The notes below the pieces were generated by a model, which saw nothing but the letters and a program-made list of their open reading frames with translations, was not told the DNA's origin and made no database searches. Position numbers and translations under genes: made by a program. Shown here piece after piece: positions 41,647 to 64,000 of a stretch of 64,000 bases of DNA. The stretch covers positions 1,054,001 to 1,118,000 of the forward strand of contig OX337237.1 of NCBI GenBank assembly GCA_946965045.2, written 5' to 3'. The stretch is from Epithemia pelagica. Taxonomy: Eukaryota; Protista; Bacillariophyta. Position 1 is the stretch's first letter; each line of letters begins with the position of its first letter.

Positions 41647-42415
41647 AGTATTGCAGATTGCAGATGCCGGATGCCTGATCAAAAAGTGTTATCGGTTGTC
41701 GTCTTCTGCGTTTGCGGTAGGCGTTTTTGTTTTTTTCACGACTGGCCTACTACCTCATGATCCGGAAGAAGAATCGGAAGCATTTGGATAATGCTTCACT
41801 TGAATTCTACGACGGACGGGAAGTACGCTGAGAAGAACGCCGGCAGGTAGCCTCGCAGTCTTTCGCCCTGCTTCAGGCAGATTCCTCTTCGGGTTTCGGG
41901 CGGGCGGATGTCAACTTCCGAGCTCGATCGCAACTCGGAAGCCAGACCATCAGCCCCCCACGTGTTTTTCTGCGCCCACGTACATAAACGCTATTGACAA
42001 GCGATCGAACCACCGTGAGCGTTTCTGGAGTATTGCCTTTCGGAGAAATGGAATAAGCCCCATGCCAAACTGTTAAGCCCCTTTTGCTTCCGGTTTCAAT
42101 CCCTGATTAAGGAGATTCGGATGAATGCCGTCTTCGGACATTTCAGCAGCGCCGGCTTGTCTGTCGTGCGTACGTCGTGACGCGGCAGGAATTCGGGAGC
42201 AGATGTTCGGACACTCGTGGACGAGCACGCGCGCAGCGCGCACGCGGCCACGGCCAGCGCGCACCTTTGGTTGGAGCTAGAGAATCGAAACATCAGCGTC
42301 AGAGTCGAGCTCACAAATCTTGGGATCAGTGAGCAGAGACTTCGAATTCTGCCATCTCAAGTGGAGGACTCACGTTAGTCAGTAGCATAAGAGATTCAAA
42401 AACTTTGTCTTTACG

Positions 42416-45151
42416 ATGACTGTTTCGAACAATCCTTTCTTTGAGGATTCTGATGGTGCTCTCTTTTCGGACTCGGATCCTCCGATTCGCGCGAATACTT
42501 CCTCTACTACCGCCGGGACAGGAGTTGCTAAGAAACGCAGTCCCGTTGTTTCTCGACCATCTCAAGAGGATTCTCACCATGGTGTTTCTGAGCCTACGAT
42601 GATTGATTTGAGTACAGGTGTGACTGGTGATGATCGTGAAGTAACTCGTGGAGTTACGAAGTTGACTTCAGCGACTGGCGGGATTCCGTTTGATGCTGGT
42701 GGTACCGTGGTAGAGGACTCTCCTTCCAATGCTCCCCCACCCCCCTTTCGTCGCTCGGATTTGTTCAAAGGAACCTTCCCGATTTCCTCTTCGGAGAAAG
42801 CACGCCTTCGTTCCTGTCGTCCGGTTGATTGGTCAGATGCTTTCTGTTCCGACTTTCATTTGTTGATTGATGGCGACCCCAAGATTTGGTTGGAGATTTG
42901 CAAGAAGTTTAATGGAGTTATCAACCTGGATGACCTCCAGCACTTCATTTCTTGTGACTTGAACGGGATGCCTTTGATGTTTATCGGAGTCGATCATGAC
43001 AAGAAGTTGCGGCTTTTTCATAATGTTATGATCGCCCCTGACACTGGTTCGATTATCAACCCGACTCCTTCTTTTATCTGCTTGACACAGATGGGCTTCG
43101 ACAGTCCTCCCATGGCTTTGGTCTCGGATAAACTACACTCCCTATTGATCAGCTCAGAATATGAGGGAATCCCTTCCGTTCCCACCATTGTTGCCGAGTG
43201 TGTTTCGGACTTGCTTTTGGAGGGTCAGGAATCTAATCAGTCCCGTCCGATTGATGTGTTACCTGATTTTCGTTTGGATGCCTTGAAGTTTTCGAATCTT
43301 ACAGTTCCCGAAGCTTCCCAAGACGAGAATGAGAATGGTGGTGATGCGGTCCTTCCCCAAGATCCAACGGTTTTCGAACACATGGGACTGTTTCCGATTC
43401 ATCCCGCTATTGCTGGTGAATTGTTGAAGCTGTTCTCCCGATTTGGTTTTGGTTCTGAAAAATGTTCTCCCCCAGCAATCGCAGCTCTTATCTTTCGATT
43501 CCTTGTCAAACGTTGGGCTCGTTCGATTGGTCGAAACGAGTTTGGAAAAGCTAAAACGGTTGATCTATCTCATCCCGTCTTTTCTGGGATCATGCCTTTG
43601 TTTCGATTCCTTTGGGTGGCCACCAAGAAACCAGGAAACTTAGACCCCGTGGTCTTTGATGTACCTTCGAAATTTGAAGCTGCTTCCAAAATGGTCCGCC
43701 GTCGTGTTGCACAAGCATTCCCAGATCTGAATTCTCCCGATCGAGTTGCTCGAGCTCGTCAACACAACCAAGCTTTACCACCAACCCCTAACCCAAACCC
43801 GGCTGTTCCTCCAACGGGCTTACCCCCTCCGACCTTTGCTGGTGGAATCTCTCCAGAGACTTTATTGATGACAGAGCACCTGTCGGATAAACTTTCTGAA
43901 GCCTTTCTCCGTCACTCCACTCGCTTATCCAAGGACAAAGAGGACGAGAAGAAAGATATTTTCAAGAACGCGATCCACCTCAAGAATGGAATCTTATTTG
44001 GCCAAGTCAACGAGAACAGTACCACCCTTCCGACAGCCCCAACGGATTTGGCTCTGGAGATCTTTCGACAAAAGAGTACCCATACTCTTCATTCATTGAT
44101 ACACGCTCGAGTGTTCCGCAAGTCTCAGAATGCATGCTACACTCTGTTTAGCCAGTGTGGGGTATTGCAGAAGTATGGCCTCCGTTGGAAGGGGGACGAC
44201 CACCCCAGTGGTCTCTCCCCTTTCTCTTTCGACCCTTACAACAACAGCGGTCCTGACTCCAACTTATCACTCGATAGTGATATCCAGCAGCATATCTACG
44301 AATGCTCGCTTCGCCAAGACAATGGACTGTCCACGAAGGACATGCGAGACATCTTTACCAATGAGAAGTTGTTTTGTCCGTTGACGTGCGACAAGTATCT
44401 TCTCCAGCTCCGCTCCTATTACTTGTTTGCAGTAGCCGTCTGGGGAAGTTCGTCCTTCATAGTGGGCCAGATCCACAAGATGGTGGAGCACCATATTACG
44501 AACCGTCGACTTTATCGCAATAGTCAGAACTACGACAATAAGTTCTTGACACAAGTTCTCTTTTGGCTTGATGACGCTGTCCAGCGTTATATTGAAGATG
44601 TGCTTGAGCCGGCGGAGTGCATTGAAGATATTACGTTTGATTCTCTTGAATACCATACGAATCAATTGTGTTACAAGATTGTATCTCGCGAGTCGGTTTG
44701 TCGCATGTTGCCTCGATTCTTCCTTGCAGCCTTGAATGCAAAGAGCAACAAAGTTACCCCGAATTCTTCTACCAACTCAGGACTGTTGGGGTCTTCAGCA
44801 AATTCTGGAAGCAACGATTCGAAGAAACGAGGAAACAATGATGCTTCCAATGGTGGTTCTGCCGATAACACTCAGAAGCGCGTCAAGTTTGATTCGCCGA
44901 AAGAATGGTGTCTCCCAGCTCGCATGAAATACTCGAAGATTTTCGTTCGATCAGTTTTGGAGAAGATGCCCACGATTGAGATTGATGGCGAAGCGAAACC
45001 TTTTTGTAATCGTTTGTTGGCCCTTAAATCTTGTCGTAACGGGGACAAGTGTTACTTTGTACACGCCGATCCTCGCGATCATGGCAAGGGCGATGAAGTG
45101 ACAGCGTTCTTCAAGAAAGTTTATGCCGAAGCGAAAAAACAAAACACCTGA
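42416..45151 (+). CDS. ORF1, gag-like, 911 aa, C-terminal CCCH-type finger
   Basis: Intact ORF starting 11 nt after A1; ends with CNRLLALKSCRNGDKCYFVH. Confidence 0.8.
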   Translation: MTVSNNPFFEDSDGALFSDSDPPIRANTSSTTAGTGVAKKRSPVVSRPSQEDSHHGVSEPTMIDLSTGVTGDDREVTRGVTKLTSATGGIPFDAGGTVVEDSPSNAPPPPFRRSDLFKGTFPISSSEKARLRSCRPVDWSDAFCSDFHLLIDGDPKIWLEICKKFNGVINLDDLQHFISCDLNGMPLMFIGVDHDKKLRLFHNVMIAPDTGSIINPTPSFICLTQMGFDSPPMALVSDKLHSLLISSEYEGIPSVPTIVAECVSDLLLEGQESNQSRPIDVLPDFRLDALKFSNLTVPEASQDENENGGDAVLPQDPTVFEHMGLFPIHPAIAGELLKLFSRFGFGSEKCSPPAIAALIFRFLVKRWARSIGRNEFGKAKTVDLSHPVFSGIMPLFRFLWVATKKPGNLDPVVFDVPSKFEAASKMVRRRVAQAFPDLNSPDRVARARQHNQALPPTPNPNPAVPPTGLPPPTFAGGISPETLLMTEHLSDKLSEAFLRHSTRLSKDKEDEKKDIFKNAIHLKNGILFGQVNENSTTLPTAPTDLALEIFRQKSTHTLHSLIHARVFRKSQNACYTLFSQCGVLQKYGLRWKGDDHPSGLSPFSFDPYNNSGPDSNLSLDSDIQQHIYECSLRQDNGLSTKDMRDIFTNEKLFCPLTCDKYLLQLRSYYLFAVAVWGSSSFIVGQIHKMVEHHITNRRLYRNSQNYDNKFLTQVLFWLDDAVQRYIEDVLEPAECIEDITFDSLEYHTNQLCYKIVSRESVCRMLPRFFLAALNAKSNKVTPNSSTNSGLLGSSANSGSNDSKKRGNNDASNGGSADNTQKRVKFDSPKEWCLPARMKYSKIFVRSVLEKMPTIEIDGEAKPFCNRLLALKSCRNGDKCYFVHADPRDHGKGDEVTAFFKKVYAEAKKQNT

Positions 45152-47757
45152 CGGTGCCTCGGGTTGATTGATGAATCAGATAGCTCCTGTATTTTCAGTG
45201 CTTTAAGTTTCACCTATCCGTCTTCTTTCAACCCACCAGCTGTAGGTCCTTCCCGAGTACAGTCGGCCGACCTGACCTCCGAACCTCCAAGACCCAGTCT
45301 CGAGTTACCTCCTATAGTAGGAGTTCCACTTCCCAAAACTCCGACTCCCATGTTCCCCCTTCGATTCTCAGATGAACCAAGACTGTCGATCGAAGATGTG
45401 ACATCCGCCATTGAAACTGTACCTCCTTCAGAGTCACTTGTTCTCGAAAACCGCAAGCGATCCAACTCTGTCCAGTTTTCGGATGAAGTTCAATGCCAAG
45501 AGTTCTTCAAGGTAGATCCGGCAGTACGAGTTTCGATGACACCAAGACCACAAGATACTTCGGAAGTGACGGTTCGTTCAGTTTTACAATCGTCGTCGAT
45601 TCCCTCACAAGATACAGGTGATACCGATGTGATGGAAGGTGAATCCTTAGCGATTGACCCATCAATCAGTCATGACAACCAAGCATTAATCTCAGCAGTC
45701 GCACGAGCGTCAAACGCTGAGAATGCACGCCAGTCGATCCTCGATGATATCTCGACTCCCACACAAAACCCCATTGGCAATCCAAGGGCGTTTGGAGCCC
45801 CATCTCCCAACATTTCCTCTGATCAATCCGGCCGAGCACTGAGTAGAAACCTTGATCGGCTCCAAACTGAAATCAGAACAGGTGAACAGATGTTAGGTGA
45901 GTCCCATGCTCCATCCCCGTCGTCGTCTAGTGCCATTGATGTGGAAGCGAATGAGTTGGCTGAACAGCCGGCATTCCTTCCAAATGATCCGTCGCAAATA
46001 TTCAAGAGGAAAATTCCGCGACCTCCTCTCCAACCTCCCTCCTTGACACACCAACTAGATACAATAGTTGCGATTAGCCAGAGGAAGGTCCCAACTCCGA
46101 AACCGTCTCCATTTGCACATGCAGCAAATGCTGATGCGGCCAACCAAAACTCCCAGTTGATTGCCAAGTTTGACTTTGATTTACAAAGTCTCTTTGATGC
46201 GTTCCCAAACTCCACCATTAGTCCGGGCTCAGAGTTCCGCCAAATTGAAGACATCGAAAAGCTGTTGGGGACACATCCGTTCTGGCCCAAGATTCAAGAG
46301 ATTTTGACGAAGGGTGCGAGTTACACTTTCAAGAACCTTCCTTCGGACACCGACCGCAAGCAAGAGAATGACGCAATCCTTGATTACGGTAATCATGCTT
46401 CTGCCCGTAAAAAACCAGAGGCACTTCGAAAAGTAATGGCGAAGGACGCGAAGTACGGGTATGCCTTTCCCGTTACATTCGATTGCGCGAGACAGCTGAA
46501 GCATGGACGAGCTGGACCACTTGGAGTCGCTCAACATGCAGGGATCGACGAGAAAGGAGAGATCATTCTCAAGGACCGACTGGCGCACGATCAGACTTTC
46601 TCCATGGGCCATGCACCGTCACTCAACAGGTTGGTTGATGAGTCAGTGTTGATTGATTTAGTCTATGGCTGGTGCATTGACAGATTGATACACCAGCTCG
46701 TTGCAATCCGACAGAAACACCCATCGGAACGGATATTGATTTGCAAGTTTGATTGGGGTGCGGCGTATCGACGGATTAACGGAGATGGAATCCTCACCGC
46801 AATGGTGTCAGCTTCAACTTGCTGACTTGCCGTCGCCCCGACCACATATTCATTGCAGATTCTTGTCCCTATGGCATGGGAGGTTTCTCCGTGAAGACGG
46901 GCAAGGCCTGGCGGTGTGAGTTGGACCCCGATATATACGCGTTGGCGGCAACAGCCGAAGAAATGAAGGAGGATGAAGTCTTTGGTCGCCCCGACCACCA
47001 CCTGTCCAACAACCTGTACGAATTTATTTGTCAGGTAGTAACCGTGTGGATTGCTTGTATGGATGGTTCTATCCAAGAAGAAGACAGCATCTTGAGCCTG
47101 TCGGACAGCAGTTCAGCGACAGGATGGCTCCATCGATCCTCCTTCGGCGTCCAAAAATTAAACCATCAACGAGTCTCGGAAAAACTTACCCTCCTGGCAA
47201 TCAACAACAACTTTGCACTCCATCCAGAGCACATACCTGGGCGAATTAACCACGTGACCGATATGTTGTCACGATCGTTTGATTGTTGCGACGAACTCAC
47301 GAAAAAGATTTTGTCTTTATACCCTACCCAGGTACCAGCCAATTTCAAGATTTGCCAACTCCCAAGCGAAATTGTATCATGGCTCTTCTCGGTCGCGACG
47401 CTGCGGCCAGAGTCTTCTTCGGTAAAGTCGAATCCTCCCACGAGGATCTCGACAGAACATGGCGAAGATGGCTCCTCCACCTTGAGCTCTTCAACCTCAC
47501 CGACGATCCCTTTTTGGACGGCATCGCGTCCATTCGGCACCGATCACAGGTCGTCTGCACGTTCATGCAACGACTCCATGACGGAGCTTTCAGCCGAGGG
47601 GTTGAGAAAAATCTACGAGCGGGCACTGTCGAGAAGGCCGTTGGCCACCTGGCATCGAAGTTCAGGAATCACGACAGGGCGAGCCCATGCCATGTCCCGG
47701 GGAGCAACCGCCTCCACCCACTTGTTGAATCGCTCAAACGAGCCTGGAAACACTTAG
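45152..47757 (+). pseudogene. ORF2 pol: RT N-terminus fused out of frame to RNase H, RT catalytic core deleted
   Basis: KDRLAHDQTF..LICKFDWGAAYRRI then jumps at about 46810 to NLLTCRRPDHIFIADSCPYGMGG..NLYEF..SDSSSATGW..HIPGRINHVTDMLSR. No YxDD motif. Confidence 0.85.
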
Positions 47758-48700
47758 ATCCAGAAGAGAAAAGACAAAAAGCGGTGACACCAAAACATCT
47801 TCGTCACACGTTGAGAGAGTATACAAAAAGGGATAGCGATGGACGAAAACCCAGGGACCTTACCTCGTTCAAAGCATGAAACGCTGAATTGGCTTGTGCG
47901 GCTTACTTCACCGCATGCCGAAGTTGCGAGTATTCCACGGTGAAACAACGTGGAAAGACTCGACTGCTGACGATTGGAAACATCGTCTTTAAACGCAACG
48001 ACGAGTTACGTTCCCCAATCGAACCCAACCATCACGACTTCCACACACAAGCCTTCTTCGTCTGCGTAACGTTCGTCTCACAGAAGAACGGAGAAAAATA
48101 CCAAACAAGAACCCAGAGCCGCACCGAGGATCACCTGCTCTGCCCAGTTCGATTGTGGGGCCGCATCATCCGTCGGATTCTCTTTTACCGACCGGACGCT
48201 CCAGCCGACACTCCGGTATATTGTTGGTTTGATCCGCTCGTCCATGCCGCAGGGAAAACGCCCAAACCAAGATTCAGCCGGGCAGAAGATACAATCAAGA
48301 TCCTTCGCGAGTCATGCATTACTGGTGGCGGACTAGCAAGATTCGGATACCGGCCTCTGGATATTGGAACGCACTCCCTTCGATCCGGAGCAGCGATGGC
48401 GCTATTCCTTGCCAAGACGTCCGTGCTCAAATCATGATCTTGGGTCGGTGGTCCTCAGCGGCGTTCTTGCGATATATACGCCCACAAGTCATGGAATGGA
48501 CGGCTGGTTTATCGACCAGCATGCTTCAGAACCCAGACTTTCGCCACGTCGACCCGTCGTCACGAACAGAAATCACAATGGGAGACGTCGACGCCCTTCA
48601 ATCGAACTTGGAGGCGGCCATCGAATCTCCAGAAGAAATCACCTTCAATGGCTCCGTGGAATTTGCCGACTTCACATCCCAACTCAACCTGGAGTTCTAA
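47283..48700 (+). pseudogene. ORF3 tyrosine recombinase overlapping RNase H; in-frame TGA at 47877-47879 and 1-nt frameshift near 48430
   Basis: AYFTACRSCEY (Arg), GTHSLRSGAA (His-x-x-Arg), IMILGRWSSAAFLRYIR (Trp/Tyr). Confidence 0.9.
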
Positions 48701-49897
48701 GGCCATCGCAATGGCGACTGAGTGGGATCTTTGATGTCAAATCCTTCGTTCAATGGTGTTGGGAGCCATCTTTGGTTCCGGGGCCTTTACGGCACACGCG
48801 TCTACTCCTAGCGTGACTACTGACAACTATGGTGAGACCTGCACGAGGACGGAGCGCCACGATAGCTGCAGGATGTGGTCGCTGGGTCATCCCCTCGTTG
48901 TCTGTCGTGCGTACGTCGTGACGCGGCAGGAATTCGGGAGCAGATGTTCGGACACTCGTGGACGAGCACGCGCGCAGCGCGCACGCGGCCACGGCCAGCG
49001 CGCACCTTTGGTTGGAGCTAGAGAATCGAAACATCGGCGTCAGAGTCGAGCTCACAAATCTTGGGATCAGTGAGCAGAGACTTCGAATTCTGCCATCTCA
49101 AGTGGAGGACTCACGTTAGTCAGTAGCATAAGAGATTCAAAAACTAGCCCCATACCCGCCCTTGGGAGCCATCTTTGGTTCCGGGGCCTTTACGGCACAC
49201 GCGTCTCCCCCCGACTTTGGGGGGGGCCCAGGCAGGCGAAGGGGGAAAGGGAAGGGGAAAGGAAGGACTTGCCATAGGATGAGGGATTCCACTTCCTAAC
49301 GGGAAACCGATATAACCGTCGCCAATTTTTAGTCTTGGTATATCTTGAGTACACTAATTTCTATAGTGATCATTTTTCGTGGAGGGAGTTAAATGAGGAA
49401 TGACAAATCCCCCGCGGCTGTGGGACTGGGCATAATTCGAACTTTCTAACTACCCAATCAAATCTTGCCATAAAAAAATGAGCGACAGAAACAGACAGAT
49501 CCTCAGTACCAAGCTTTCTACACAGGAATCACGTATGTACATGGCTACGTGAAATTTGTACCGGAAAATCGCTTGATTCTCAGTATAACACAAACAGTAG
49601 TACCAAAGACCGTGGACATCTCACCATCCACATTTCATTCCTCATAATTGGTAACAAAAACCAGTGATTACACCGAAGACACAACACCATCATCACTCCA
49701 TCCGTTCCCACCACCATAGCGTTCCCACCACCATAGCGTTGCCATTGCGTTGTCATACCGTTGTCATCATCACCAACAACAACAACAAGCCGAAAGCCAC
49801 AGCGGCACAGAAAGTAAGTGTTTCCCTCGCCGATGGATGTGATGACAACAGTAACTAACCTTTGCTTTCTTCCATGTTTACAGGAAAAGTGGAGTGC

Positions 49898-50092
49898 AGT
49901 AAGGCCGTTCCCAAAACGGACCCGAAACCAAATCGAAAAGTAAGGCCGTTCCCAAAACGGACCCGAAACCAAATCGACAAGTAAGGCCGTTCCCAAAACG
50001 GACCCGAAACCAAATCGAACAGTAAGGCCGTTCCCAAAACGGACCCGAATTCATTCTTTCAGTAAGGCCGTTTTAACGGACCCGAAACCAAA
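49898..50092. repeat. Five tandem copies of a 40-41-bp unit (gtaaggccgttcccaaaacggacccgaaaccaaatcga...)
   Basis: gtaagg starts at 49899, 49940, 49981, 50022 and 50062. Each unit has a CCGTT..AACGG inverted pair. The array ends about 15 nt before ATG 50108. Confidence 0.95.
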
Positions 50093-50107
50093 GTCCGGCC
50101 ATTAACC

Positions 50108-51394
50108 ATGGCCCGGGACCGTCGACCCAAGGCGCCTCCAAAGGCGGCCTCAACAACATCCACGGCAGCAACCGCTGCTGTGAAATCTGAATCTCGTCCC
50201 AAAAAACGGGAACAAGAGGACGATGACAACTTTTCGATCTCGACTCCTATCCCGAAAAAGAAATCCAGGACGAAAGCGCCTGTGGATTCGGAGGAGGAAG
50301 AGGAGAACGAATCCGATGATGAAAACTCAGTCGTACCAATCGACAAACCTCCCAAAAAGAAGGGGGACTCCTCAAAAACGGCCGCCTTGAAAAAGGATGA
50401 GTCGGATGAAGAGGAAGACGACGACGAAGTCGAAGATGACTGTCCTATATTCGAGGACAAGACTCTCGCTTTGTCCAACTACCTCCCCCGCCATCGGACC
50501 AAAGTCAATAATTTTATGAACGAAAACGTTACGGCTTCCGCGGCGATCGCATTGGCAAATGCCATTGACGAGAATGTATGGTTCCCGCTGGGTCAAACGA
50601 CTCCTGGCGCGGATCTATACGGGTTCAGCCTGATTGCTCAGGCCAACAAGGTGCCGTTGAAAGAAGACGAGACGCTAGCAATGGCTATGAACAACCGCAT
50701 TACGTCGTTGATCAAGCCTTTGTACAATTTTCAGAAAATCGAAGAAGCCAAGTTTAACTTGAGCGATTACAGCATCCCCACTCCAGTGGTGGTTGTCTTC
50801 CCGAGCAAAGGCGATGCCAAATACAAAGGCTTTGCTGTTTGTGGATCATGGATCTACGTTGCCAAAGAGAAGTACACGATGGAAGCAACCCAGCAGAACT
50901 TTTTGAATCTGGGTTACATGGAAATCGTGAACGAGAAAGGCGATCGTGTTCGTCACAAACACAGCCGATCCAAATTGGAAGAGACGACAAGGCGCCTCGA
51001 ACAGGCTGTCACGAGTCTAGAGAACAGTGTCTTGGACATCAACACTGCCCATTTGGAATCGAGCATCAAAACGGAAGACACCACTCGGCGCCTCGAAGAG
51101 GCTGTCGCTGGATTGGTGTCGAGTACGAGCTCGATCTTAGAGAAGCTTGAACAAGGGACAAACAAGCCCTCCGGTTCATCTGAAGCTACTCTTGCCGAGT
51201 CTCCCGACTCCAAGGGAAAGGTTGGACCTCCTCCGGAAGCAGAAGGACCGGAACAGACCGACGAGGATATGATTCCTACCATTCCTTCTCCAGCACCGGA
51301 AGCGGAAGCGAAATCGACCCCTCCCAAACCCACGGTTATCAACATCAGCCGAGGTGAAGTTGTTCTACAGAAGGGACAAATGCTCCGTGTCTGA
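50108..51394 (+). CDS. Intact 428-aa orphan ORF inside the nested element (K/E/D-rich N-terminus, globular core, duplicated coiled coil)
   Basis: ATG in ACCATGG context, no disruptions; LEETTRRLEQAV and TEDTTRRLEEAV form an internal repeat. Confidence 0.75.
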   Translation: MARDRRPKAPPKAASTTSTAATAAVKSESRPKKREQEDDDNFSISTPIPKKKSRTKAPVDSEEEEENESDDENSVVPIDKPPKKKGDSSKTAALKKDESDEEEDDDEVEDDCPIFEDKTLALSNYLPRHRTKVNNFMNENVTASAAIALANAIDENVWFPLGQTTPGADLYGFSLIAQANKVPLKEDETLAMAMNNRITSLIKPLYNFQKIEEAKFNLSDYSIPTPVVVVFPSKGDAKYKGFAVCGSWIYVAKEKYTMEATQQNFLNLGYMEIVNEKGDRVRHKHSRSKLEETTRRLEQAVTSLENSVLDINTAHLESSIKTEDTTRRLEEAVAGLVSSTSSILEKLEQGTNKPSGSSEATLAESPDSKGKVGPPPEAEGPEQTDEDMIPTIPSPAPEAEAKSTPPKPTVINISRGEVVLQKGQMLRV

Positions 51395-51784
51395 AAGGGC
51401 ATCAGGCATTTTGCCATTGTCCCCAACAAGGACTATGTCACAAAACTCCTACAAAAAGAAGAACAACGACGCAGGGAAATGGCAAACGCCGCCCTCAACC
51501 CGAATTCACACCATGTCCATGCGTCTCGCCGTTGAAGAACGACGAAAAACCCTATCCTACTCCAATTTGTTATTGGAGTGGTATTTGTCATGCCACTCTA
51601 CAAATGGGGAAGAACATACGAATGGGGTAAACCTACTACTTGGAATTACTCTGTAAATCCTCGATACTAATATTGCTGTTTCAACACAGTCGATATCTCT
51701 GATAGGACTTGAAATTTTTCACGTGCTTATTATATTACTGACGATGGAAACTAAAGAAGACTCTGACGAAGTGTTGATTTAGAG

Positions 51785-51878
51785 GGGCCATGTAATCACA
51801 TGGACTCCGATGAAGAAGGCAGGGCCACGTTCTCTCGTGGACTCTGAACGAAGAAGGGCCATGTACTTACATGGACTC
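51785..51878. repeat. Three 23-nt hairpin repeats (gggcca..tggactc) with compensatory substitutions
   Basis: 51785-51807 ccatgt-aatc-acatgg; 51822-51844 ccacg-ttctct-cgtgg; 51856-51878 ccatgt-actt-acatgg. Confidence 0.85.
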
Positions 51879-53130
51879 TTCCGAACTTTGGGTCCCATTG
51901 TTAATTCTGCGATTGGGACAACCAAGAAGATGAGGTAGGCGTCCGTTCCGATTAGGGCGTCTCACCCATTCTAAAAAAGCTTGACAGCAAATCTGTTGTT
52001 GTGCCTTGGGGCGTTTGGTACGAGCGATGTCTCTCCACGACCACGACGACGCAGATGCCTGTGAGCAAATCTCAATGGGACTCTCTCGAGTGCCCGACAT
52101 TTCAATTGCTTTCCTGACACCCTCAGGAGGAGTATATTTTACCTTATAAGGATTGGTGATCTTGACCGATGAGGGAATACCCGAAGCATCGGAGACACGA
52201 TGCTTGGAGGCCACAGACTTTTTCGCAGGCGTCTGCTTGAATGCTTGAGAAAAAATCGACGGTGCACTCAGGACATCGATACAAACGGGCTCTTCGAAAG
52301 GATTGCCAATAGTATCCTGTGTTTTGGGTTCTTGTTGGGTTGGCACGATGGTTGCAATCTCTGCCGAAGTGTCCAATTCAATGCGATTGGTGCTGATCGT
52401 GTCCACCTCGACACCATCACATTCCATAGAAGGTGGAAGTGAGCACGATAGCTGCGAAGGCGAGGCCGTTGGAGGAACGGACGCCCTACCCGATCGTAAC
52501 TCGTGTGGCAACGGCGTTGGATTATGCCCACACGCCCGACAATAACAACGATCAGACAAAGGACTTGTCTCCACTTCGGCTTCTCTCTGGAGTTGCTCCG
52601 ACAAGTACTGGGCGAAGAAACGCTCACCGTTGTCTTCGGGGAGAGGACGAGCATAGTCGAAGGGTGACACCGGATAACCAATGGATTCAGCCAATCCATT
52701 GGCGAAAGTCAAGTCACTATGATTGAAAAACTCGGGATGGTTCTTCCATCCTGAAGGAACATTGGGGCGAGAAACACTCGACTCCTCCGCCATACGGATC
52801 TTGTGACAAATCTTGGTGTTGTAACGGGCAGTGCCCACCAGATTCAATGTATCACACAGATCCGCCCTCATTCCGCAATTAGCGAAGTGGGCCAACTGGT
52901 CGTGGTACTGCTCGACCTTGGACTCACATCGTAACGAGATATATTCGTTGCACTCGTGTTTTGTGGAAGGTGTTGGTTTGATTACACGATAAGTTTCGTG
53001 TAAAGGCAGGGCATCCTGGATGTGGACTGCGTTCTTCATCTGTTCGGTCACGGCGGTCTTCGTGTCGACAGTGAACAGCTTCTTACCAGTACTCGATACT
53101 TCATTCGGTCCTGTGCTCTCGCTGCTGCGT
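51867..53130 (-). pseudogene. 5'-truncated Zisupton/KDZ-like transposase C-terminus
   Basis: GKKLFT..AVHIQD..LRCESKVEQYHDQLAHF..GTARYN parallels, from memory, the Zisupton HI.CIQDP..RGSTSLESFH.HL.RF..G..RWN block around the last catalytic Glu. CYCRAC motif downstream. Confidence 0.6.
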
Positions 53131-53978
53131 TAGCGTCAACGTAGCAGCGGAAGAAGAAAGGATCCAGAGTCGACTTGATGCCGCCCTTCGTCCGTTGGGT
53201 CGTCTCCGGAGAGACGCCCTTTTGGCCAGTAAAGCCCATATTAGAATCCTCTTTGTCCATCCCTCTTGGTTTTGTTTTTGTTTTTAGAATTATGAGAATA
53301 GTCGTGCGTTGTGCGTTTTTTAGAGAGCTGAGGAGGGAATTTTTCGTGTTGGCATTTTCTGGTGAACTCGGTGGGGAATCGGCATGTTCCGAATTCCTTC
53401 CGACCGGGACCACCGACTTTGAAATATTGAATAGTGTTACTTAGATGTTTTTTATAGCTAATTGGATCGCAATTGGATTTTTTTAGACTAATTATTAGTG
53501 TTGATCCGACAGTTGGTTGACAGTTGGAGGATAGTGATAGGGGGGAAAAGGCACCAATCAGATCGCTGCCTGAGGAAACTGCACCCCTCCCCCCAGCGTG
53601 ACTACTGACAACTATGGTGAGACCTGCACGAGGACGGAGCGCCACGATAGCTGCAGGATGTGGTCGCTGGGTCATCCCCTCGTACTGCACGACACGTAGC
53701 AAAGACACGTAAATGGACCACGTCTATGACGGATCAATCGTACTACACACCAACGCCGTGCACATCAGCAGATGGGAGATGGAGACAGTCTCACAAATTT
53801 CAAGACCGGATCGATAGATGGCATCTCTGGCGTTTCACGACAAGAGCATCAGCACAGTCGCAACAACAGCAACAACAACAACGACCTCAATACCATCCTC
53901 AACCAAATCGTCAAGGCAACAAGATATTATGTGCGCTGAAAAGATCTTTCTCTTCAACAAGGAAGCCATTGGCTTTAC

Positions 53979-54677
53979 ATGAAGTTCAAATCGGCCGCCA
54001 TTCGATTGTCCGAGGCCATGTCCATGATTGAACAAGAATACGCCGATACGCCACAACACCACCACCAACAACAACAACAACACAAGAGCATGGACGAGGA
54101 GAGCCTGACAAAACGAGCAGAAGAAGATCAAATGGAGTGGGAATGTGATCCCTCCAACTTTGAATCCTTTTTTGTGCCCCGTTGTTCCCCTCGGAAAGAA
54201 CAGGATTGGTCGACCACCATTCCAGGAGACCATCACTTGCGTTCCTTCTCTCTCTTTGACAAGGCCTTGACCATTCCATCTCACTTGTGCCCCGATCGAG
54301 ATCGCGATTACACCGTGATCTGTTGCATCCTGCTCTACAACTATGGCTTGAGTAATCACTTGATGGGGCTTGTGAGTGGAAGTGACGACCGATTGGAAGA
54401 GGCTCTCTTGTCCTACGAAATGGCCTTGGGCTTTGTCAGTGTCGTGGAACAAGGCACATTGCCACTCGTCCTCGAATTGGCCCTGCTCAACAATTGCAGT
54501 CACATTCACAGTCTACACTTTTCGACGTGGAATGTCCATGCCTGTCTCCAACGAATGCACATGCTCCTCATGACATTGTACATGACTCGCAAGGTTCCTC
54601 AAACGGAGCTGTCTCCCTTCTCGGTCAACGTGGTCTACAATGCTGGACAATACGAACGACCGGCACCAGCAGCCTGA
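53979..54677 (+). CDS. Diatom-family helical (TPR-like) uncharacterised protein
   Basis: CILLYNYGLSNHL..LEEALLSYEMAL..LALLNNCSHIH; intact 232-aa ORF. Confidence 0.75.
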   Translation: MKFKSAAIRLSEAMSMIEQEYADTPQHHHQQQQQHKSMDEESLTKRAEEDQMEWECDPSNFESFFVPRCSPRKEQDWSTTIPGDHHLRSFSLFDKALTIPSHLCPDRDRDYTVICCILLYNYGLSNHLMGLVSGSDDRLEEALLSYEMALGFVSVVEQGTLPLVLELALLNNCSHIHSLHFSTWNVHACLQRMHMLLMTLYMTRKVPQTELSPFSVNVVYNAGQYERPAPAA

Positions 54678-55312
54678 ATCAACTACCGTTCCTTTTGTCT
54701 TGATGTGATCCTTTCTCGGTGTACAACCAGTTCATGATCATCTTGCTTGGGTTGTTTGCATTTGCATATACGTGTACACCATTATGGACGTTTGGTACCC
54801 TTTTTCCTTGCTCCAGAAGGTGTTGTCAGTGTTGGACTCACTACGGTCGACCCGTTGCATCACTGCTCTCTCTCTGTCTCTTCCAGTCGACTCACGGCGG
54901 TGAACAAGAGTGTCGATGGAACAACCATTTTGTTTCCTACCACCAACTGTGTGAAGCAGGCTCTAATCTCAATGCAGTCCTAAAAACACAGCCATTCTTC
55001 CTAGAAACAGTAAAAACCTTTTTTATCATGGCGTGAACTCGCGAAGTACAACAGCATTGAATATGGTCTCGCGGAGGTAGCCGCCGAAAGTATGCGAGCT
55101 TTCTGGATCACGATGTCACGACGTGTCCCTCTCCTCCTCCCCCTCTTTTGGACCTGCCTGGTTCGGAAAAGGAGGCCGACACCGACGCCCACCAAAATAA
55201 AGTAGCCTTTTTGGTATTGGTGTTGTGATAACTGTGAACAATAGTACAATAAACACGACGAGTGCTATTAAGTTGTGTGTGCAATGTGAGGACTCCTTTG
55301 ACTGCTACTAGT

Positions 55313-56476
55313 CTACTTTCCCATTTTGCCAAGTCGATAATCTGAAATGGCCTTGTGAATTTCTTCTTGTGTGTTCATCACAAAGGGTCCTTGATTTACA
55401 ATGGGTTCATTGAGCGGTTCTCCTCCCAAAATCAAGACACTGGAATTGGCATCGACAACCCGCAGCCGCACCGTATCCGATCCGTCCACTCGCATCAAGG
55501 CCACGTCTTGGGGACCCAAACTAGATTCCTTCAGTTTGGGGTAGTCGGTATGATCCGTACTGCTCACGACTTGAATGGCACCTCGCCGGACAAAGACAAT
55601 GCAATTTTGACTCGCCGGAAAGGGCAAATCGACTTCAGAACCGGCCTTGGGCAAATTGATATCCCACATTTGTACGGGCGAAAAGGTGGAAGCCGCACCC
55701 TTGGTATCCCCCAATTCCCCCGCAATAATACGAGCCGTTCCCACCGAGTCGTTACTATCACTGTTCAGGGGTAGATTGACGACGGGAATGTTTTGTTTGA
55801 GAAGGGCTTGATAGCCCGGTTTGGTCATTTTGTGCTGTTTCGGCAGATTCACCCACAATTGGCACATTTCAAAGGTTCCTCCGGACCCGGTAAATTCGTG
55901 CGAATGAAATTCTTGATGAATGATCCCGCGTCCCGCCGTCATCCATTGGACATCGCCTTCTCCAATGACATCTTTTTGACCCGTGGAATCTTGATGTTCC
56001 ACTTCGCCTTGAAAGGCCACCGTGACAGTTTCAAAGCCCCGATGGGGATGTTGTCCGACGCCCAGCGGGGGACCGACGCGAGCGGGAAACTGTTTGGGTT
56101 CGGCATAGTCAAACATTAACAGTGGCGACAATTCTTGGGTAAAGGCACTGTTGGCAAAGACGGGGTAGACACGAAAGCCATCGCCCACCCAATGAGCGGG
56201 AGGACGGGCCATGATTTTGCGCACCGAACGAAGTTTGGCCGACGAGGACATGTCGTTGTCGTTGTTGTGGTTGTGGTTGGAGGATTCACAAACGGCGGGT
56301 TCGGGGCTGGTATTCGTCGTCGTTTCGAGACTATCGGAGAGAGATACCGTGCTTGGTTTGGCAGTCGTCAGGGGCAAGACACCAAAGGCAGCAGCCGTGG
56401 TGACCAAAACGGTGGAGGAGGTGATCAGGGCACAACAGACGGAAGCAGCAAGTCTTTCAAGACTGGTGACTTTCAT
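55313..56476 (-). CDS. PIR: Pirin (bicupin) with bipartite plastid presequence
   Basis: HPHRGFETVT, EHQDSTG, VQWMTAGRGIIHQE, QLWVNLP and GEPLNEPIVNQGPFVMNT motifs; N-terminal AAA-FG. Confidence 0.95.
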   Translation of the reverse strand: MKVTSLERLAASVCCALITSSTVLVTTAAAFGVLPLTTAKPSTVSLSDSLETTTNTSPEPAVCESSNHNHNNDNDMSSSAKLRSVRKIMARPPAHWVGDGFRVYPVFANSAFTQELSPLLMFDYAEPKQFPARVGPPLGVGQHPHRGFETVTVAFQGEVEHQDSTGQKDVIGEGDVQWMTAGRGIIHQEFHSHEFTGSGGTFEMCQLWVNLPKQHKMTKPGYQALLKQNIPVVNLPLNSDSNDSVGTARIIAGELGDTKGAASTFSPVQMWDINLPKAGSEVDLPFPASQNCIVFVRRGAIQVVSSTDHTDYPKLKESSLGPQDVALMRVDGSDTVRLRVVDANSSVLILGGEPLNEPIVNQGPFVMNTQEEIHKAISDYRLGKMGK

Positions 56477-57103
56477 TCACAGTCAGTAGTTTGATGGAAA
56501 CTGTGTTTTGTTGGTTGATTCTGTGCGTAATTCTTGCACAAGACAAGGAGATTTTGTTTTATGAGACACTTTGTTATATTCTACAATCGTCGACTTCTCT
56601 CATGGTCAGCTGAGATTTTGTGGGGATGATGGTTTTGCACTGGATTCGATGATGTTCGTACATACGTCATCTTACACGACTCGAAAAGTTGATGGGACTG
56701 AAATTTCCGCGACTGCAGGATAAGTGATACTAATTAACGGGACCATGATCAAGTATGACGTATCCTTGATTCTGTCGAAGGTGCGCATGTGAGGAGCTTC
56801 CTAAATTCGAACAAGCTTTTCATGATCAGGACCAAATCTGTTAAGTGTTTGGCTACGTACGTGGATAATCAAGAATGACGTGACCTTCAAACTCGGTGTC
56901 ATTCAGTTTTCATGTCTCTCCGACACCAGCCGTTCGGTTGGGTTTGGTGCGTCCCAAAAGAAACCAAACAACAACAACAACACCGTCCGTGTCAACAGCC
57001 AATCCTTCTTTAGAGGTCTTGGTCTTTGAGAGTGTGTTGTGATTGATTCGTTTCCAAAAAGGAAAGCGAGCAAAGAAGAGTGTGTAGTTGTCAACAAGCC
57101 ACC

Positions 57104-58204
57104 ATGTCGTTGGGTCGTTTTCTGTTTGTGACGCCGCTGTTGCTGACGTCTCAAGCGTTTGCTCCCTCGTGGAGCGGTCGTAGAACGACAGTTTCGTTCT
57201 TGTCGTCACCCATGGGCATGCCGGATCCAGGACCTCCTCCTCCTCCTGGTATGGGTCAATTTGCAGGTGGTCCTCCTCCGATGCAACCTCCTCCCATGCA
57301 GCCTCCTCCCATGGAAGGACCACCTCCTCCGCAACAAGCCATGGCACCTCCTCCGCCGCAAGAACTAGCCCAGCCGACGGCCGTACCACCCCCACCCCCT
57401 CCGTCGGATGCGGCCATTCAACCCGTCCAACGTCGCATGGGCGTTCGTCCCGTTCGAGAATATGAATACGAAATTTCCAATCGTTGGGATGCCTTGGACA
57501 AGAAATATGTCAGTTCGACCGGTGCTCCCTACGGTCGGTACGATTTGGGATCCTTTACACCCGAACCTCCCATTGCCCGTGAATACACGTGGTTGCGCCC
57601 ACGGGAAAACGACGATGAACTCATGTTGGCCGGTGTCGATGAATCTCGATGGGACGAAGTCGAACGTCGCTTGTCGTTGTGTGATGCCGGCGATACCGGG
57701 GCGCGTCCCGGTCAATACAGTCGGACCGTGACACCCTTTTTGCCCGTGGCCCGCAGCAATGAACGCAATGCTGGTGGCCCCTATGGTCGCTACGAACCCT
57801 TTACGCCCGAACCGCCCATTGCTCGAAGCAGCATGCGTCGCAACACTGGTGGCCCCTACGGTCGCTACGAACCCTTTACGCCCGATCCACCCATTGCTCG
57901 GGAACCCACGTGGTTGCGGAAACGGGAAAATGACGATGAACTCATGTTGGCGGGTGTCGATGAAACGCGATGGAATGAAGTGGAACGTCGCGTCAAAATG
58001 AGTGATGCCGGCGATGTTGGTGCTCGTCCCGGACAATACAGTCGGACCGTGACACCCTTTTCCCCCGTGGCCCGAGAAAAGGGACGCGTCACCTATGTCG
58101 CCTCCCAACAAGCCAAGGCGGCGGCCCTCCCGTCAACATCGGCCATGCCCGGACCCTCCATGCAAGCGACGACCGAAGCGGTTCCGGCGCAAGCTTCCAA
58201 CTAA
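57104..58204 (+). CDS. Plastid-targeted Pro-rich protein with internal repeats
   Basis: MSLGRFLFVTPLLLTSQA-FAP; PPPM repeats; two about 75-aa repeats and an extra GGPYGRYEPFTPEPPIAR unit. Confidence 0.82.
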   Translation: MSLGRFLFVTPLLLTSQAFAPSWSGRRTTVSFLSSPMGMPDPGPPPPPGMGQFAGGPPPMQPPPMQPPPMEGPPPPQQAMAPPPPQELAQPTAVPPPPPPSDAAIQPVQRRMGVRPVREYEYEISNRWDALDKKYVSSTGAPYGRYDLGSFTPEPPIAREYTWLRPRENDDELMLAGVDESRWDEVERRLSLCDAGDTGARPGQYSRTVTPFLPVARSNERNAGGPYGRYEPFTPEPPIARSSMRRNTGGPYGRYEPFTPDPPIAREPTWLRKRENDDELMLAGVDETRWNEVERRVKMSDAGDVGARPGQYSRTVTPFSPVAREKGRVTYVASQQAKAAALPSTSAMPGPSMQATTEAVPAQASN

Positions 58205-59172
58205 CTCCACAAGAACAAACACAAGAAGAAAACCACCAAGAAGAAGAAGAAGAAGAAGAACTACGAGAAAGGGAGTCGGAACAAGGCTGGGAATACCGGA
58301 ATGTTATTTGTTGTCTGGATGATGCATATACTATACTAATCACAAAGAAGAAGAAAAAAGAAGAAGAAGAAAAATATTATTGTTTTATATAGTTGCCAAG
58401 ACGAAAACTAAAGATCAACCTCTTGGGGAACTTGTAGCTACCAAGCAAACTGACAACTCGAGTCTACCATGTCGCTTTAGCGTCGAGCATCCAACGTTCG
58501 TCGTCTCTTGTCACCTACTTGTGTGTGTTTTGGAAATGCAGGGGAGTCGTCTCGTCGTTGGCACAGTGGACGACACAAAACGAGTTTTTCTTAAAGCTGT
58601 GTACGAGGAAAACTCTGGATTTGTGCTATGTATGACCTGTTGTATGTGACACCACCACCAACAAGCGGCAACAGACTCAGCCTTGTAGGTAGTTATTTAT
58701 ACGGTAACACGGTACGCTGTCAACAGTGGGACAAACGATCCGGAGTCCGGAGCTATGAGTCCTACACAGTTAAGGTTGTCCCGTGTCACTCTCGAGCCGC
58801 CCATTTCGCGAGTGTGACCGTGCGTGATCTTCGTGGCACGGAACTTAATACTCTTGAGCGTTTAGATCAAATTATGGTTTTATTATAAACTATCGATGAT
58901 GATATCCAAGCGATGAGATGTACGAAGTTTTTCTATATTCCCTCCGACCACCCGCTCCTTTTTGCTCCACCAGTAATCGCGGTCCGACGATGACGGGGTC
59001 CTTTTAGATTGTTAACTTGTCCTGTTTCTCGCCACCGTCTTTGTCGGCTCGCTGGACCTTATTCATTGTCTACATTTCGAAGTAAGCAGCGCAGTGTGGT
59101 GGAATGGAAAACAACACAACAGCAGTTTGTTTCTCTGCGGCTTCCCTGTTATCATCAGCACGGCCTGATGTA

Positions 59173-59714
59173 ATGTCCTTTGCATTTGATTTTCAAGTTC
59201 CTTCAGAGGCAGACGAGGCGGCAATCGCCACAAGTACCCAAAAGAGTGCGCAAGGACGAGAAACAACAGCTGATCATTTCAAGGGAGCCATTGGAACGGG
59301 TTATTGATTGGGTCTCGCCACGTTTCCCTCACATGGGCTCGAAACGAACAACCGTGGTCTGGGAGATTGCTCTGAGGGCCCTTTTATAATAAGTGATGCA
59401 AAGCACAAAAAGACGATTCGGATGAATCATATGATTTGATTATGGCCGCGGAAACCTTATACACGTTAGAATCAGCTCAAGAAACGTGCCATTTGTTGGC
59501 TCGCTGGTTAAAACCGGAAACGTGTATGGCCTACCTTGCAACCAAACGGTATTACTTTGGTGTTGGCGGAGGAACTCAAGAGTTGTGGCGTGTTGTGGAG
59601 ACTAATTGTCCCAACCTTTTGACCTTGGAAACCATTCGAGTCTATGATAATGGGGTATCCAATATTCGCGAACTCGTCCGAGTGCGCGAGCAATCACAAG
59701 CCAGTCCTGGTTAA
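59173..59714 (+). pseudogene. Remnant of a METTL18/HPM1-like SAM methyltransferase
   Basis: N-terminal MSFAFDF and C-terminal YDLIMAAETLY..LKP..AYLATKRYYFGVGGG..DNGVSNIRE. The SAM-binding motif I is missing and stops or frameshifts lie between. Confidence 0.65.
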
Positions 59715-59953
59715 TCCAACAATGCCAGTCGATAGCGCTACTGTTCTTAACCCAACGAATCCTTGTGTTGCGATTCTTCGAAGCATCACTCCACGTCCGT
59801 CTCTGCAAACACTAAGTGGTAGAGCTTTCTGCAGTGACTGCAACCCATCTGTGTTTTTACTTCACTTTGTCGTTTGCTGATGCAACCTTATCTGTACCGA
59901 GACATGCACATGGTGGTCATCTAAGACTTGATACAACCATGTCACCTCTGGGT

Positions 59954-60633
59954 GAGCAACAACTTAATGACAGGAGAGGGGTAAAGACTCGTTGACAAAG
60001 TTGGAGCGAGCCACGACTTGGCACCTGAAGTACCGTACATCACTTACATGTGATATGGGAACCGACGTCTTCCAGCCTAGAGGGATCGATTTGAAAGTCA
60101 AGTCACCTTTGACACTCTCTTTTTGCTTCAGGCTCCTGAGACGTGGACATCATTGCTTTTTTCGGGACCATGAGACGTGGACATGGTGAATATCCAAGGC
60201 TTTATACAACCATTCTACATCTGACGGAGCAACAACTTGATGACAGAGTGGTATAGACCCTCTGTGAATAAGTTGTAGCGAGCCACGACTTGGCACCTGA
60301 AGTGCCGTATATGCGATACGGGAACCGACGTCTTCCAGCCTAGAGGGATCGATTTGAAAGTCAAGTCACCCTTGACACTCGCTTTTTGCTTTCGATACCC
60401 TTCAGGCCCCTGAGACGTGGACATCATTCCCTTTTTCGGGACCATGAGACGTGGTGAATATCCAAGGCTTTATACAACCATTCTACATCTGACGGAGCAA
60501 CAACTTGATGACAGAGTGGTATAGACCCTCTGTGAATAAGTTGTAGCGAGCCACGACTTGGCACCTGAAGTGCCGTATATGCGATACGGGAACCGACGTC
60601 TTCCAGCCTAGAGGGATCGATTTGAAAGTCAAG
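59954..60633. repeat. About 2.6 tandem copies of a 263-268-bp unit
   Basis: accgacgtcttccagcctagagggatcgatttgaaagtcaag at 60061, 60324 and 60592. Confidence 0.95.
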
Positions 60634-60791
60634 GATATCCAGTTTTTGTGGTTCTTGATGCGAAAAGCGGAAATACAACAATCTACATTTTTCTTGTCCA
60701 CACAGACCATCCAACATCCAATGGCAGACTCCGTCATGTAACAACATATTATATGACACCATCATCGCTGGAAGAACAAGGTTTAGATTTC

Positions 60792-62588: not shown

Positions 62589-63250
62589 AAAAAGAAAGAG
62601 TATATTGCTTCCGGTCTTCGAGAGAGAAAGAGAAGATGGAGTGCTTGTAACTTGTAACCAAGGAAGTCAATCGTATAGGAACAAGCGTTGTTTCTTGTTA
62701 TTCTACTGACTGCGAGTGCTCCGGGTTCCGGAGAGTGGGATAATCGTGATCGTGCGAACAACCTCGCTCGGTCGCGGTGGTGGTGACGACCCATGAGCGA
62801 TTCAAAGGCTTGCATCCACGACTCCGTCCCAGATTCCAGAGGTTGGATCTGCATCAATCTCTAGCGTCCGAACACTGCAAAAATTCACAGGTTGTCATCC
62901 AAGAATCTTGCAGTGGCGCTTCGTATTGATACCAGTTGTCGTTTCTCATTGGATTGCACCACCATGTCTGGATTCCATCTTTTCCATTTGATCTTTTCTC
63001 TGGGGGTGGTTGATGGCCACAACAGAAGAGCGTTCTATTGCGTGTTGATCTCTCCATTGCAATTTGTAAAAGAGTTGGTGATTCCATTCAGTGGCAGCAC
63101 ACCACCACCAAGTCTCTGATTGAAAGAGTGTTGTTCTTGTGTTGGATTCAAAAAGATTTTTGGGTGCAAAACCGAATAGTGTCTCGCCCAAAAGTTCCCC
63201 CTCGTGGAAAGGAATCAATCCATTCATTCTCATTGTGGACAATCAACAGG

Positions 63251-64000
63251 ATGGTGGTCCTTGTCTTGAGACTTTCGGTCTTGTTTGTGTGGCTGTTTCA
63301 TGCGGGGAATGCATTGCGCAATGTCAAGGTTGCCAACACCCAAGAAGCCATTGCATCTCCAAAGGAGAAAACTCCAAGGACTGGACCAACCACGGCAACA
63401 ACAACTTTTTCGTCGGAATCCGACTCTACCTTCTTTTTGTCTTCGGAAACATGTCCCTTGCACTGTTTGAATGGATCCACCTGCCGTCGCGTCAAACGCG
63501 TTGCTAGTGAAGAAGAAGTGCAAAGGGAGGAGTGGCAGTGGCACTGTGAGTGTGTTGCTGGATTTCAAGGAACAGAGTGTGGCGATACCTCTACTAGTGC
63601 ATCCATCAATGGTCTGGACTCTTTATTTCCACAACCACAAGAAGCACAAGAAGAAACACAACGGCGCATCAATGCGGCTTCCTCGACAAACACATCCCCC
63701 GCCAAGAAACTGGGACAAGCCATGACCTTGACCAATGTGATTGGATATACGATGGAATCGGATGCGGTCAAGGTCGCCATGGCGGGTCCGTATTTGGTGA
63801 TTGGCGAACGACGTATGGGCAATGGATTGGCGCAAGTGCATTATCGGAAACCCAATGCCACAACCGCCTTTTCCTTGGTTTCCACCATTACAGCCTTGGA
63901 GGGGACGCGCAATTTTGGCGATGCCGTGGATATCGAAGTGCATCCCACCACGGGTCAGCCGGCACTGGTCGTGGGTGCCTCTCGGACCATGCATGAAACC
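63251..64000 (+). CDS. Secreted EGF-like plus FG-GAP-like protein; runs off the window
   Basis: ATG 63251 is open to the window end. Signal peptide; CPLHCLNGSTC..CECVAGFQGTEC; VAMAGPYLVIG and NFGDAVDI..LVVGA. Confidence 0.8.
   Translation, partial: MVVLVLRLSVLFVWLFHAGNALRNVKVANTQEAIASPKEKTPRTGPTTATTTFSSESDSTFFLSSETCPLHCLNGSTCRRVKRVASEEEVQREEWQWHCECVAGFQGTECGDTSTSASINGLDSLFPQPQEAQEETQRRINAASSTNTSPAKKLGQAMTLTNVIGYTMESDAVKVAMAGPYLVIGERRMGNGLAQVHYRKPNATTAFSLVSTITALEGTRNFGDAVDIEVHPTTGQPALVVGASRTMHET

Follow-up and report, generated by a model that had tools for sequence, protein, structure and literature searches.

The 4,374-bp insert at positions 49213-53586 of the window, by which we mean the whole 64,000-nucleotide stretch of Epithemia pelagica contig OX337237.1 analysed here, is an internally deleted copy of a recently active DNA transposon of 6.2-6.4 kb, which we term family 1 and whose 1,091-residue protein is a DDE transposase with a D-D-E triad. 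The insert splits the last repeat of a host element built on split direct repeats, and the 8-mer that stands on both sides of it, CTCCCCCC, is not a simple copy of the target: because this 8-mer, exactly or nearly, is carried by every copy and uninterrupted paralogous sites read CTACTCCT, it is no ordinary target-site duplication. We put the probability of the overall explanation, a deleted copy of family 1 that arrived by a route involving donor flanks, at roughly 0.7. That figure does not extend to its parts. The identification of family 1 and its enzyme we regard as close to secure; the model in which donor bases travel with the element is offered tentatively, as an idea to which our analysis of the flanks gives rather less than an even chance.

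Coordinates are window positions on the plus strand unless stated otherwise, and the insert, its open reading frames (ORFs) and its repeats were read on the 64,000-nt stretch. The host element runs from repeat A1 (42157-42404) through its ORFs to B1 (48759-48898), A2 (48898-49145, identical to A1 at 248 of 248 positions) and B2, and it is B2 that the insert interrupts. About 44 bp of B2 (49162-49204, equal to 48759-48801 in B1) adjoin the left 8-mer at 49205-49212; the right 8-mer, a direct reading of the same CTCCCCCC at 53587-53594, is followed by 89 bp (53595-53683) equal to 48810-48898 of B1. The preliminary description had claimed that a DNA transposon is nested here, flanked by an 8-bp direct repeat and lacking clean inverted ends, and had noted that the end of B reappears downstream; all of this can be read directly at and beside 49205-53594. 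The insert is far beyond chance, because 45 matches to its 4,374-bp body in the 60.5-Mb genome have the same ends.

Collecting other copies, as had been proposed, gave at least five full-length members of family 1 (loci L021-L025, 6.2-6.4 kb, 98-100% identity), and the window copy is 98-100% identical to such copies on contigs C1, C5 and C18. The comparison of copies at the DNA level covers this genome alone. Three of the five (L021, L024 and L025) have intact reading frames, with a transposase gene of 1,091 codons on the minus strand and a second gene, ORF1, of 475 codons on the plus strand, and L023 is frameshifted. Segmental duplication of the copies was ruled out, their flanks being unrelated beyond the 8-mer.

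The window copy is colinear with the full-length copies save for one deletion of 1,888 bp at 53093/53100, where comparison with L021 identifies a 6-bp filler, CGATAC (53094-53099), whose reverse complement, GTATCG, occurs a few bases into the lost segment. The deletion removes approximately residues 54-682 of the transposase, both catalytic Asp included. What is left on the minus strand is a C-terminal remnant at 51867-53093 (about residues 683-1091), in which the third catalytic block, ESK.E..H, and the C-terminal Cys clusters are all that remains, and an N-terminal remnant at 53100-53260 (ATG at 53260-53258, about 53 codons). The two are out of frame with each other, because a net 1,882 bp were lost, a number not divisible by three; the 394-residue minus-strand ORF (51867-53051) is hence only the C-terminal third of the enzyme. 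The preliminary description had seen a two-gene element, and the convergent ORF pair (50108-51394 on the plus strand, 51867-53051 on the minus strand) and the structured repeats are indeed present, but in an internal-deletion derivative of a 6.2-kb element. With 1,888 bp of its transposase gene gone the window copy is unable to move itself; it is, as judged from its sequence, non-autonomous, and would be mobile only with enzyme supplied by intact copies. Loci L026 and L027 are further deletion derivatives. These two (C1:5172768-5175125 and C10:336937-340942) have a common left breakpoint at about element position 1281-1287 and different right breakpoints, which suggests either a deletion hot spot or common descent.

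The enzyme has left little trace in annotated databases. A word search returned 134 homologues, none with a Pfam domain and only one with a name ("unknown protein", from Seminavis robusta). A full profile search of a public library matched 1,929 clusters at E up to 1e-3, and it was unable to bridge to annotated families because the best 150 of its clusters are close relatives only; sequence searches of the PDB, with the single protein and with the profile, found no relative. Pfam scans of both window ORFs, the full-length protein, ORF1 and the four host ORFs gave nothing at threshold. Among 29 homologues (alignment A1, which includes the L022 copy), D494 and E741 are invariant and D557 is present in 28, the exception being L022 itself; in a core alignment headed by the intact L024 copy (A2), D240, D303 and E487 are all invariant. 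The invariant or nearly invariant blocks are FAQ-D-HT, YS-D-TWP, GRLGL.H and GESK.E..H, plus Cys clusters. The minus-strand block that had been read as Zisupton-like is the most conserved one, near the third catalytic residue (E741, E745, H748 and N756 in A1); its conservation stands, as part of a DDE transposase, and its assignment to Zisupton finds no match in the corresponding Pfam profile, as discussed below.

An AlphaFold model of the core (residues 254-874; pLDDT 91.7, pTM 0.89) places strands at 236-242, 257-263, 268-274, 299-302 and 321-324 and a run of helices between 326 and about 464, with Glu487 opening a helix. The transposase is predicted to combine an RNase-H-like core with an insertion domain, wholly helical, that precedes the catalytic Glu; a Cys-rich module lies upstream. 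Its top match among solved structures is ISCth4 of the IS256 family (PDB 6xg8), with a Foldseek E of 3.7e-4 and a VIA-align Z of 12.5 over 339 residues; Hermes, the P element, Transib and RAG follow at Z 5.4-8.2, and retroviral integrase cores also come after ISCth4. We note that the L022 copy (C1:6385552-6391763), otherwise an intact full-length copy, reads YSHTWP for YSDTWP, with His in place of the second catalytic Asp; judged from this substitution, its transposase is likely to be catalytically dead, and it could act as a competitor.

At the level of the predicted fold, the enzyme is of the Mutator/IS256 type, and its nearest annotated relatives are eukaryotic DUF6729 proteins. The best match between predicted structures is to a DUF6729 cluster in the ESM Atlas, 90% of whose members carry the domain (TM 0.74 by query, 528 residues, rmsd 3.7, both sides being models), and this likeness extends over the Cys-rich module and the catalytic core. 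In a language-model search the 19 best matches are all DUF6729 clusters (0.95-0.97 for the three listed), followed by Mutator/MULE clusters at 0.80-0.82 and then by Kyakuja-Dileera-Zisupton (KDZ) clusters at 0.79; predicted Mutator/MULE structures match at TM 0.44-0.49. The DUF6729 profile (PF20499), which the preliminary description had proposed to search, yields a sub-threshold signal in 7 of the 29 members (best E 3.7e-4). The family-1 protein scores 13.3 bits against a gathering cut-off of 27, and sister families in this genome score 21-25 bits on the homologous Cys-rich segment; the Pfam model spans only the Cys-rich module and not the catalytic core. Only two genome loci exceed the cut-off (C3:1569029-1569490 at 51 bits and C10:2021993-2022430 at 48 bits). 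Since a literature search found no paper mentioning DUF6729, there is no transposon class, set of ends or duplication length with which family 1 could be compared on that side.

ISCth4 and the MULE transposases resemble the family-1 enzyme over the N-terminal and catalytic parts, in the DDE core and in the helical insertion domain before the Glu, and ISCth4 moves by copy-out/paste-in through an end-to-end junction with a donor-flank spacer of 6-8 bp and makes 8-bp target duplications (PMC7780238). They differ from it in sequence (8-9% identity; no match to PF10551 MULE, PF00872 Transposase_mut or PF20700 Mutator at E up to 1) and in organization, family 1 having no terminal inverted repeats, unfaithful flanks, a second gene, and a 1,091-residue protein with extra Cys-rich modules at its N- and C-terminal sides.

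The preliminary label, "Zisupton/KDZ-like", could be taken further, to an ordinary member of that superfamily with a true 8-bp target-site duplication. Such a member would account for the 8-bp flanking direct repeats, for a large DDE enzyme with Cys clusters upstream and for the extra gene. Duplications of 8 bp are known from Zisupton, and inverted ends are missing from some KDZ elements (PMC12730594; bioRxiv 10.1101/2024.08.15.608186). Two Cys pairs are invariant in A1 (C295/C298 and C336/C339); the KDZ-associated CxC5 profile finds a match in only 1 of 29 members (E 0.0086), and the language-model score of 0.79 is a lead only. The domain used to define KDZ is PF18758 (PMC9297572; bioRxiv 10.1101/2024.08.15.608186), and it is detected in none of the 29 homologues, nor in the window ORF or the full-length protein (E up to 1), nor in nine divergent homologues scanned over their full length (E up to 0.5); a six-frame genome scan with it was silent, but its controls were equally silent, which leaves that scan uninformative. 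DUF6729, Mutator and MULE clusters all score nearer than KDZ. No SWIM zinc finger was matched by Pfam in the transposase or the 29 homologues, the conserved CxCxxC of the family-1 protein (C867, C869, C872, followed by xH) not having SWIM spacing, and the proposed search for TET/JBP and SAP domains likewise found none. Finally, the 8-mer is nearly constant across loci and unlike the empty paralogous site, which a copied target would not be. We therefore consider ordinary KDZ membership improbable: of the label, the DDE transposon with 8-bp repeats survives, and the KDZ assignment gives way to a fold nearest ISCth4 and DUF6729. The suspicion that the family is undescribed looks right. It fails the sequence tests for MULE and KDZ, and the literature search found no description of Zisupton in diatoms. 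What emerges is an unnamed and abundant superfamily with atypical ends and flanks.

The flanks of this family are unusual, and they speak against the earlier reading of the 8-mer as a faithful target-site duplication. At both sides, every copy of family 1 and of its sister family 1b (66-69% identical to it) carries CTCCCCCC itself or a version of it changed at one to three positions; the left end of every copy is preceded by the same or a near-identical 8-mer, and all 13 right 8-mers in the two families begin with CTCCC. The host repeat tells a different story. At 20 distinct uninterrupted sites, drawn from 28 locus rows of which several overlap, it always reads CTAC[T/C/A]CC[T/C], and 17 of the 20 read CTACTCC[T/C]; among these sites are B1 of the same host element and L036, a 99%-identical A2-B2 paralogue. 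In the family 1/1b pairs with both ends read, the two flanks often differ, and they do so in a polar way: deviations from CTCCCCCC fall at positions 1-3 of the left 8-mer (ATC, CTT, CTA, ATG, TTC), with an additional A at position 7 in two copies, and at positions 6-8 alone of the right one.

It is possible to save a faithful duplication by supposing that CTCCCCCC is a strict target, that B2 of the window already read CTCCCCCC before insertion, and that unequal flanks are later mutations. Of the 13 copies in families 1/1b whose two ends were both read, 8 have identical flanks, host repeat subfamilies do vary at positions 5 and 8 of the site (CTACCCCT, CTACTCCC, CTACACCC), and well over a thousand CTCCCCCC sites are expected in a 60-Mb genome. 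Yet the site reads CTACTCCT both in B1 of this host copy and in the 99%-identical paralogues, and B1 equals B2 at the insertion site in other host copies that carry both; since B2 of the window is otherwise identical to B1, this account needs three substitutions within 8 bp and none in about 130 bp. Flank mismatches in ten copies amount to 6 of 80 positions (about 9 of 104 in an enlarged set), far above the 0.2-1.5% divergence between family-1 copies, and later mutation would hardly fall so consistently at left positions 1-3 and right positions 6-8. We regard a strict target as unlikely, to about the same degree as ordinary KDZ membership.

The same unfaithful pattern appears, with variable 8-mers, in family 2, a sister family of 4.1 kb that lacks ORF1 and has 44% protein identity. 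Across 20 left/right pairs, flanks belonging to one copy show a clear relationship (permutation p below 5e-6), yet only 2 of 20 are identical and 5 of 20 agree in at least 7 of 8 bases; position by position, identity is 0.80 at 3-4 and 0.35-0.60 at 5-8, and the right 8-mer always starts with CC, whatever the left one reads. Across the 33 insertions of families 1/1b and 2, then, the two flanks are related yet unequal and the part on the element side is constant. A fixed boundary, by which part of the 8-mer would belong to the element and the duplication would be shorter, was tried as well; no boundary fits the window, L022, L026, L027 and L030 together. We also observed that European Nucleotide Archive entry ERZ21939226 (contig ctg1239l) equals window positions 45313-64000 at 100% over 18.7 kb (L075). 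This entry is another release of the same genome, so its proteins are not independent evidence, and family 2 is a sister family within this genome rather than evidence from an independent taxon.

We suggest that these observations could be accounted for if donor bases accompany the element. Under this donor-flank model, insertion would occur at C-rich 8-bp sites with an 8-bp stagger, from an intermediate in which the right end, an 8-bp spacer and the left end are joined, either as a circle or as a tandem dimer, as in IS256-family elements. Nicking at both 3' ends and their joining to the target would leave the spacer strands as 8-nt 5' flaps, which after strand transfer would face the 8-nt gaps in the target. 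Instead of being trimmed off, the flaps would be ligated, either in full or once they had been partly trimmed and the remainder filled in from the outer side, and each flank would then be a mosaic, donor-derived beside the element and target-derived farther out. This would explain the polar differences and the mix of perfect and imperfect pairs, the near-constant CTCCCCCC of family 1, and the use in the window of a near-matching target, CTACTCCT (5 of 8 bases), which was then overwritten.

The 8-bp stagger has its counterpart in the 8-bp target stagger of ISCth4 (PMC7780238), whose junction spacers of 6-8 bp compare with 7-8 bp in the arrays described below. As an analogy of mechanism only, we would also mention piggyBac, every copy of which is flanked by the same short sequence, TTAA. 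On excision, the element takes this TTAA along in the form of 5' overhangs, which then pair with the target. Family 1 has no sequence kinship with piggyBac and matches it weakly in structure (Z 6.0), its flank is 8 nt rather than 4, near-matching targets are used, and the overhang is here a matter of hypothesis. In its strongest form our proposal is that spacer strands are kept on the 5' ends and ligated into 8-nt gaps, so that the "target-site duplication" would be in part inherited from the donor and serve as a heritable base-pairing address. We think this form doubtful, although worth stating: if true, evolution would have arrived a second time, independently, at a piggyBac-like device, here with 8 nt and a different transposase fold, and the device would offer seamless joining and a biased choice of target.

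Genomic junctions resembling the intermediate postulated by the donor-flank model are seen. Several families form head-to-tail arrays in which right and left ends are separated by spacers of 7-8 bp, and the same spacer recurs within an array; a right-end/8-mer/left-end junction of family 1 itself is found on contig C6. Each array strings together two to five related transposase genes, the period being 4,104-4,955 bp (C7:254075-268249, C8:1133200-1139163, C8:1063855-1074175, C3:1552644-1563428, C11:3263769-3269839 and C13:1707438-1727683), and wherever junctions were read, the copies are parted by the same 7-8-bp spacer.

These junctions can be read in another way, since they would also be in keeping with a circular copy integrated by conservative, site-specific or microhomology recombination at one 8-bp core, in the manner of Cryptons or Tn916, with a DDE protein that is not the integrase. 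The core is constant at both junctions, family 2 flanks have only a 5' prefix in common, and there are no inverted ends. Such an integration has, however, no obvious agent: the element contains no tyrosine or serine recombinase, and neither the DDE gene nor ORF1 matches a recombinase family. ORF1 has no recognisable family and a poor structural model, and family 2 does without it altogether. Recombinase-like motifs do occur, in the host element and outside the insert. Moreover, the DDE triad is invariant in hundreds of relatives, and a single crossover is unable to yield the two donor-type cores seen at the window site. We consider recombination at a core very improbable, more so than a strict target.

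Several points nevertheless weigh against the explanation we favor, that of a deleted family-1 copy with donor-derived flanks. The flap model predicts one mosaic flank per descendant, and the window copy has two flanks of donor type; mismatch repair would have to be added as an extra assumption. Deletion copies with filler resemble the products of gap repair after cut-and-paste excision and fit copy-out less well. Neither a circle nor an excision footprint nor a new insertion came to light, the available runs being contigs only: at L026, four such runs end at the element boundaries, with no joint that skips the element and no empty allele. A paralogous empty site exists for one insertion only, that of the window, the left flanks of L026 and L027 being single-copy in the genome and thus offering none. 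Some of the non-matching flanks of family 2 could stem from recombination between copies. As for the enzyme, the link to DUF6729 is below the Pfam threshold by sequence and derives mainly from predicted structures.

The superfamily is large. A six-frame scan of the genome with the core profile gave 157 candidate loci, of which 70 were scored, all with E below 1e-200 and mostly as open frames of 1,070-1,259 residues; on these counts, the genome holds at least 70 full-length loci of an essentially unannotated superfamily. Diatom DNA transposons are poorly catalogued, and many of these loci, in a genome of only 60 Mb, have intact frames and near-identical copies; as there is no Pfam model for the catalytic core, the superfamily is probably one of the major unannotated sources from which "hypothetical proteins" and genome change arise in diatoms. 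The intact L021, L024 and L025 copies, together with derivatives like the one in the window, make up a two-part system that might be developed as an insertional tool for diatoms. For a DDE transposon it is unusual to have flanks that are unfaithful, polar and constant in part, the more so alongside many tandem junctions, and flanks and junctions together would allow a direct test of copy-out/paste-in or flank carry-over in eukaryotes.

The ends of the insert are atypical in other respects. The left terminus (49213-49239) begins with GACTTT and a run of eight G, followed by the subterminal CAGGCAGGCGA (49229-49239), and the junction reads CCCCCC-GACTTT-GGGGGGGG with G-tracts after it, exactly as the preliminary description had it. 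At the right terminus (53563-53586), TCGCTGCCTG (53563-53572), the inverted partner of the left motif, precedes a terminal ACTGCACCC. There is no terminal inverted repeat at the insert ends; this subterminal pair of 10-11 bp is the sole inverted one, and its match does no better than shuffled sequence (score 15 versus a shuffle mean of 14). Two sister families nevertheless have it too, equally distant from either end, and families 1, 1b and 2 all show an AGGCAG motif 15-17 nt inward of the left end. G-tracts are dense inside the left end (49219-49266: GGGGGGGG, GGGGG, GGG, GGGG), and a G6 run lies at 53540-53545, about 45 nt from the right end. This pattern, also present in families 1b and 2, could form G-quadruplexes or a protein-binding array.

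The host element, taken without the insert (42157-49204 plus 53595-53683), has a perfect split-direct-repeat layout, A1, B1-A2-B2. Its four large ORFs matched no Pfam family at E up to 0.01; either its reverse transcriptase and recombinase have diverged very far, or these genes are something other than they appear to be. The layout, together with His-x-x-Arg and GRW...Y motifs in the ORFs at 47889-48700, presumably fits a tyrosine-recombinase retroelement of the DIRS/Ngaro/PAT type.

ORF1 (50108-51394) encodes 428 residues in the window copy and 475 in intact copies; a premature TGA at 51392-51394 replaces an Arg codon, the frame running on beyond it (KGIRHFAIVPNK...), and removes the conserved last 47 residues. 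A counterpart at the same position in family 1b is conserved at 33-40% identity, over a central domain and a short C-terminal one, and family 2 lacks the gene. There was no Pfam match to ORF1, a word search found near-identical copies only, and its AlphaFold model (pLDDT 42.6) was too poor for a structure search; as far as its sequence goes, it appears to be a lineage-specific accessory gene with no recognisable host counterpart. The insert contains tandem repeats with units of 41, 17 and 34 bp. The 41-bp repeat (49898-50049, 3.7 copies) lies directly upstream of ORF1, and its number differs among copies, as seen from matches offset by 41 bp.

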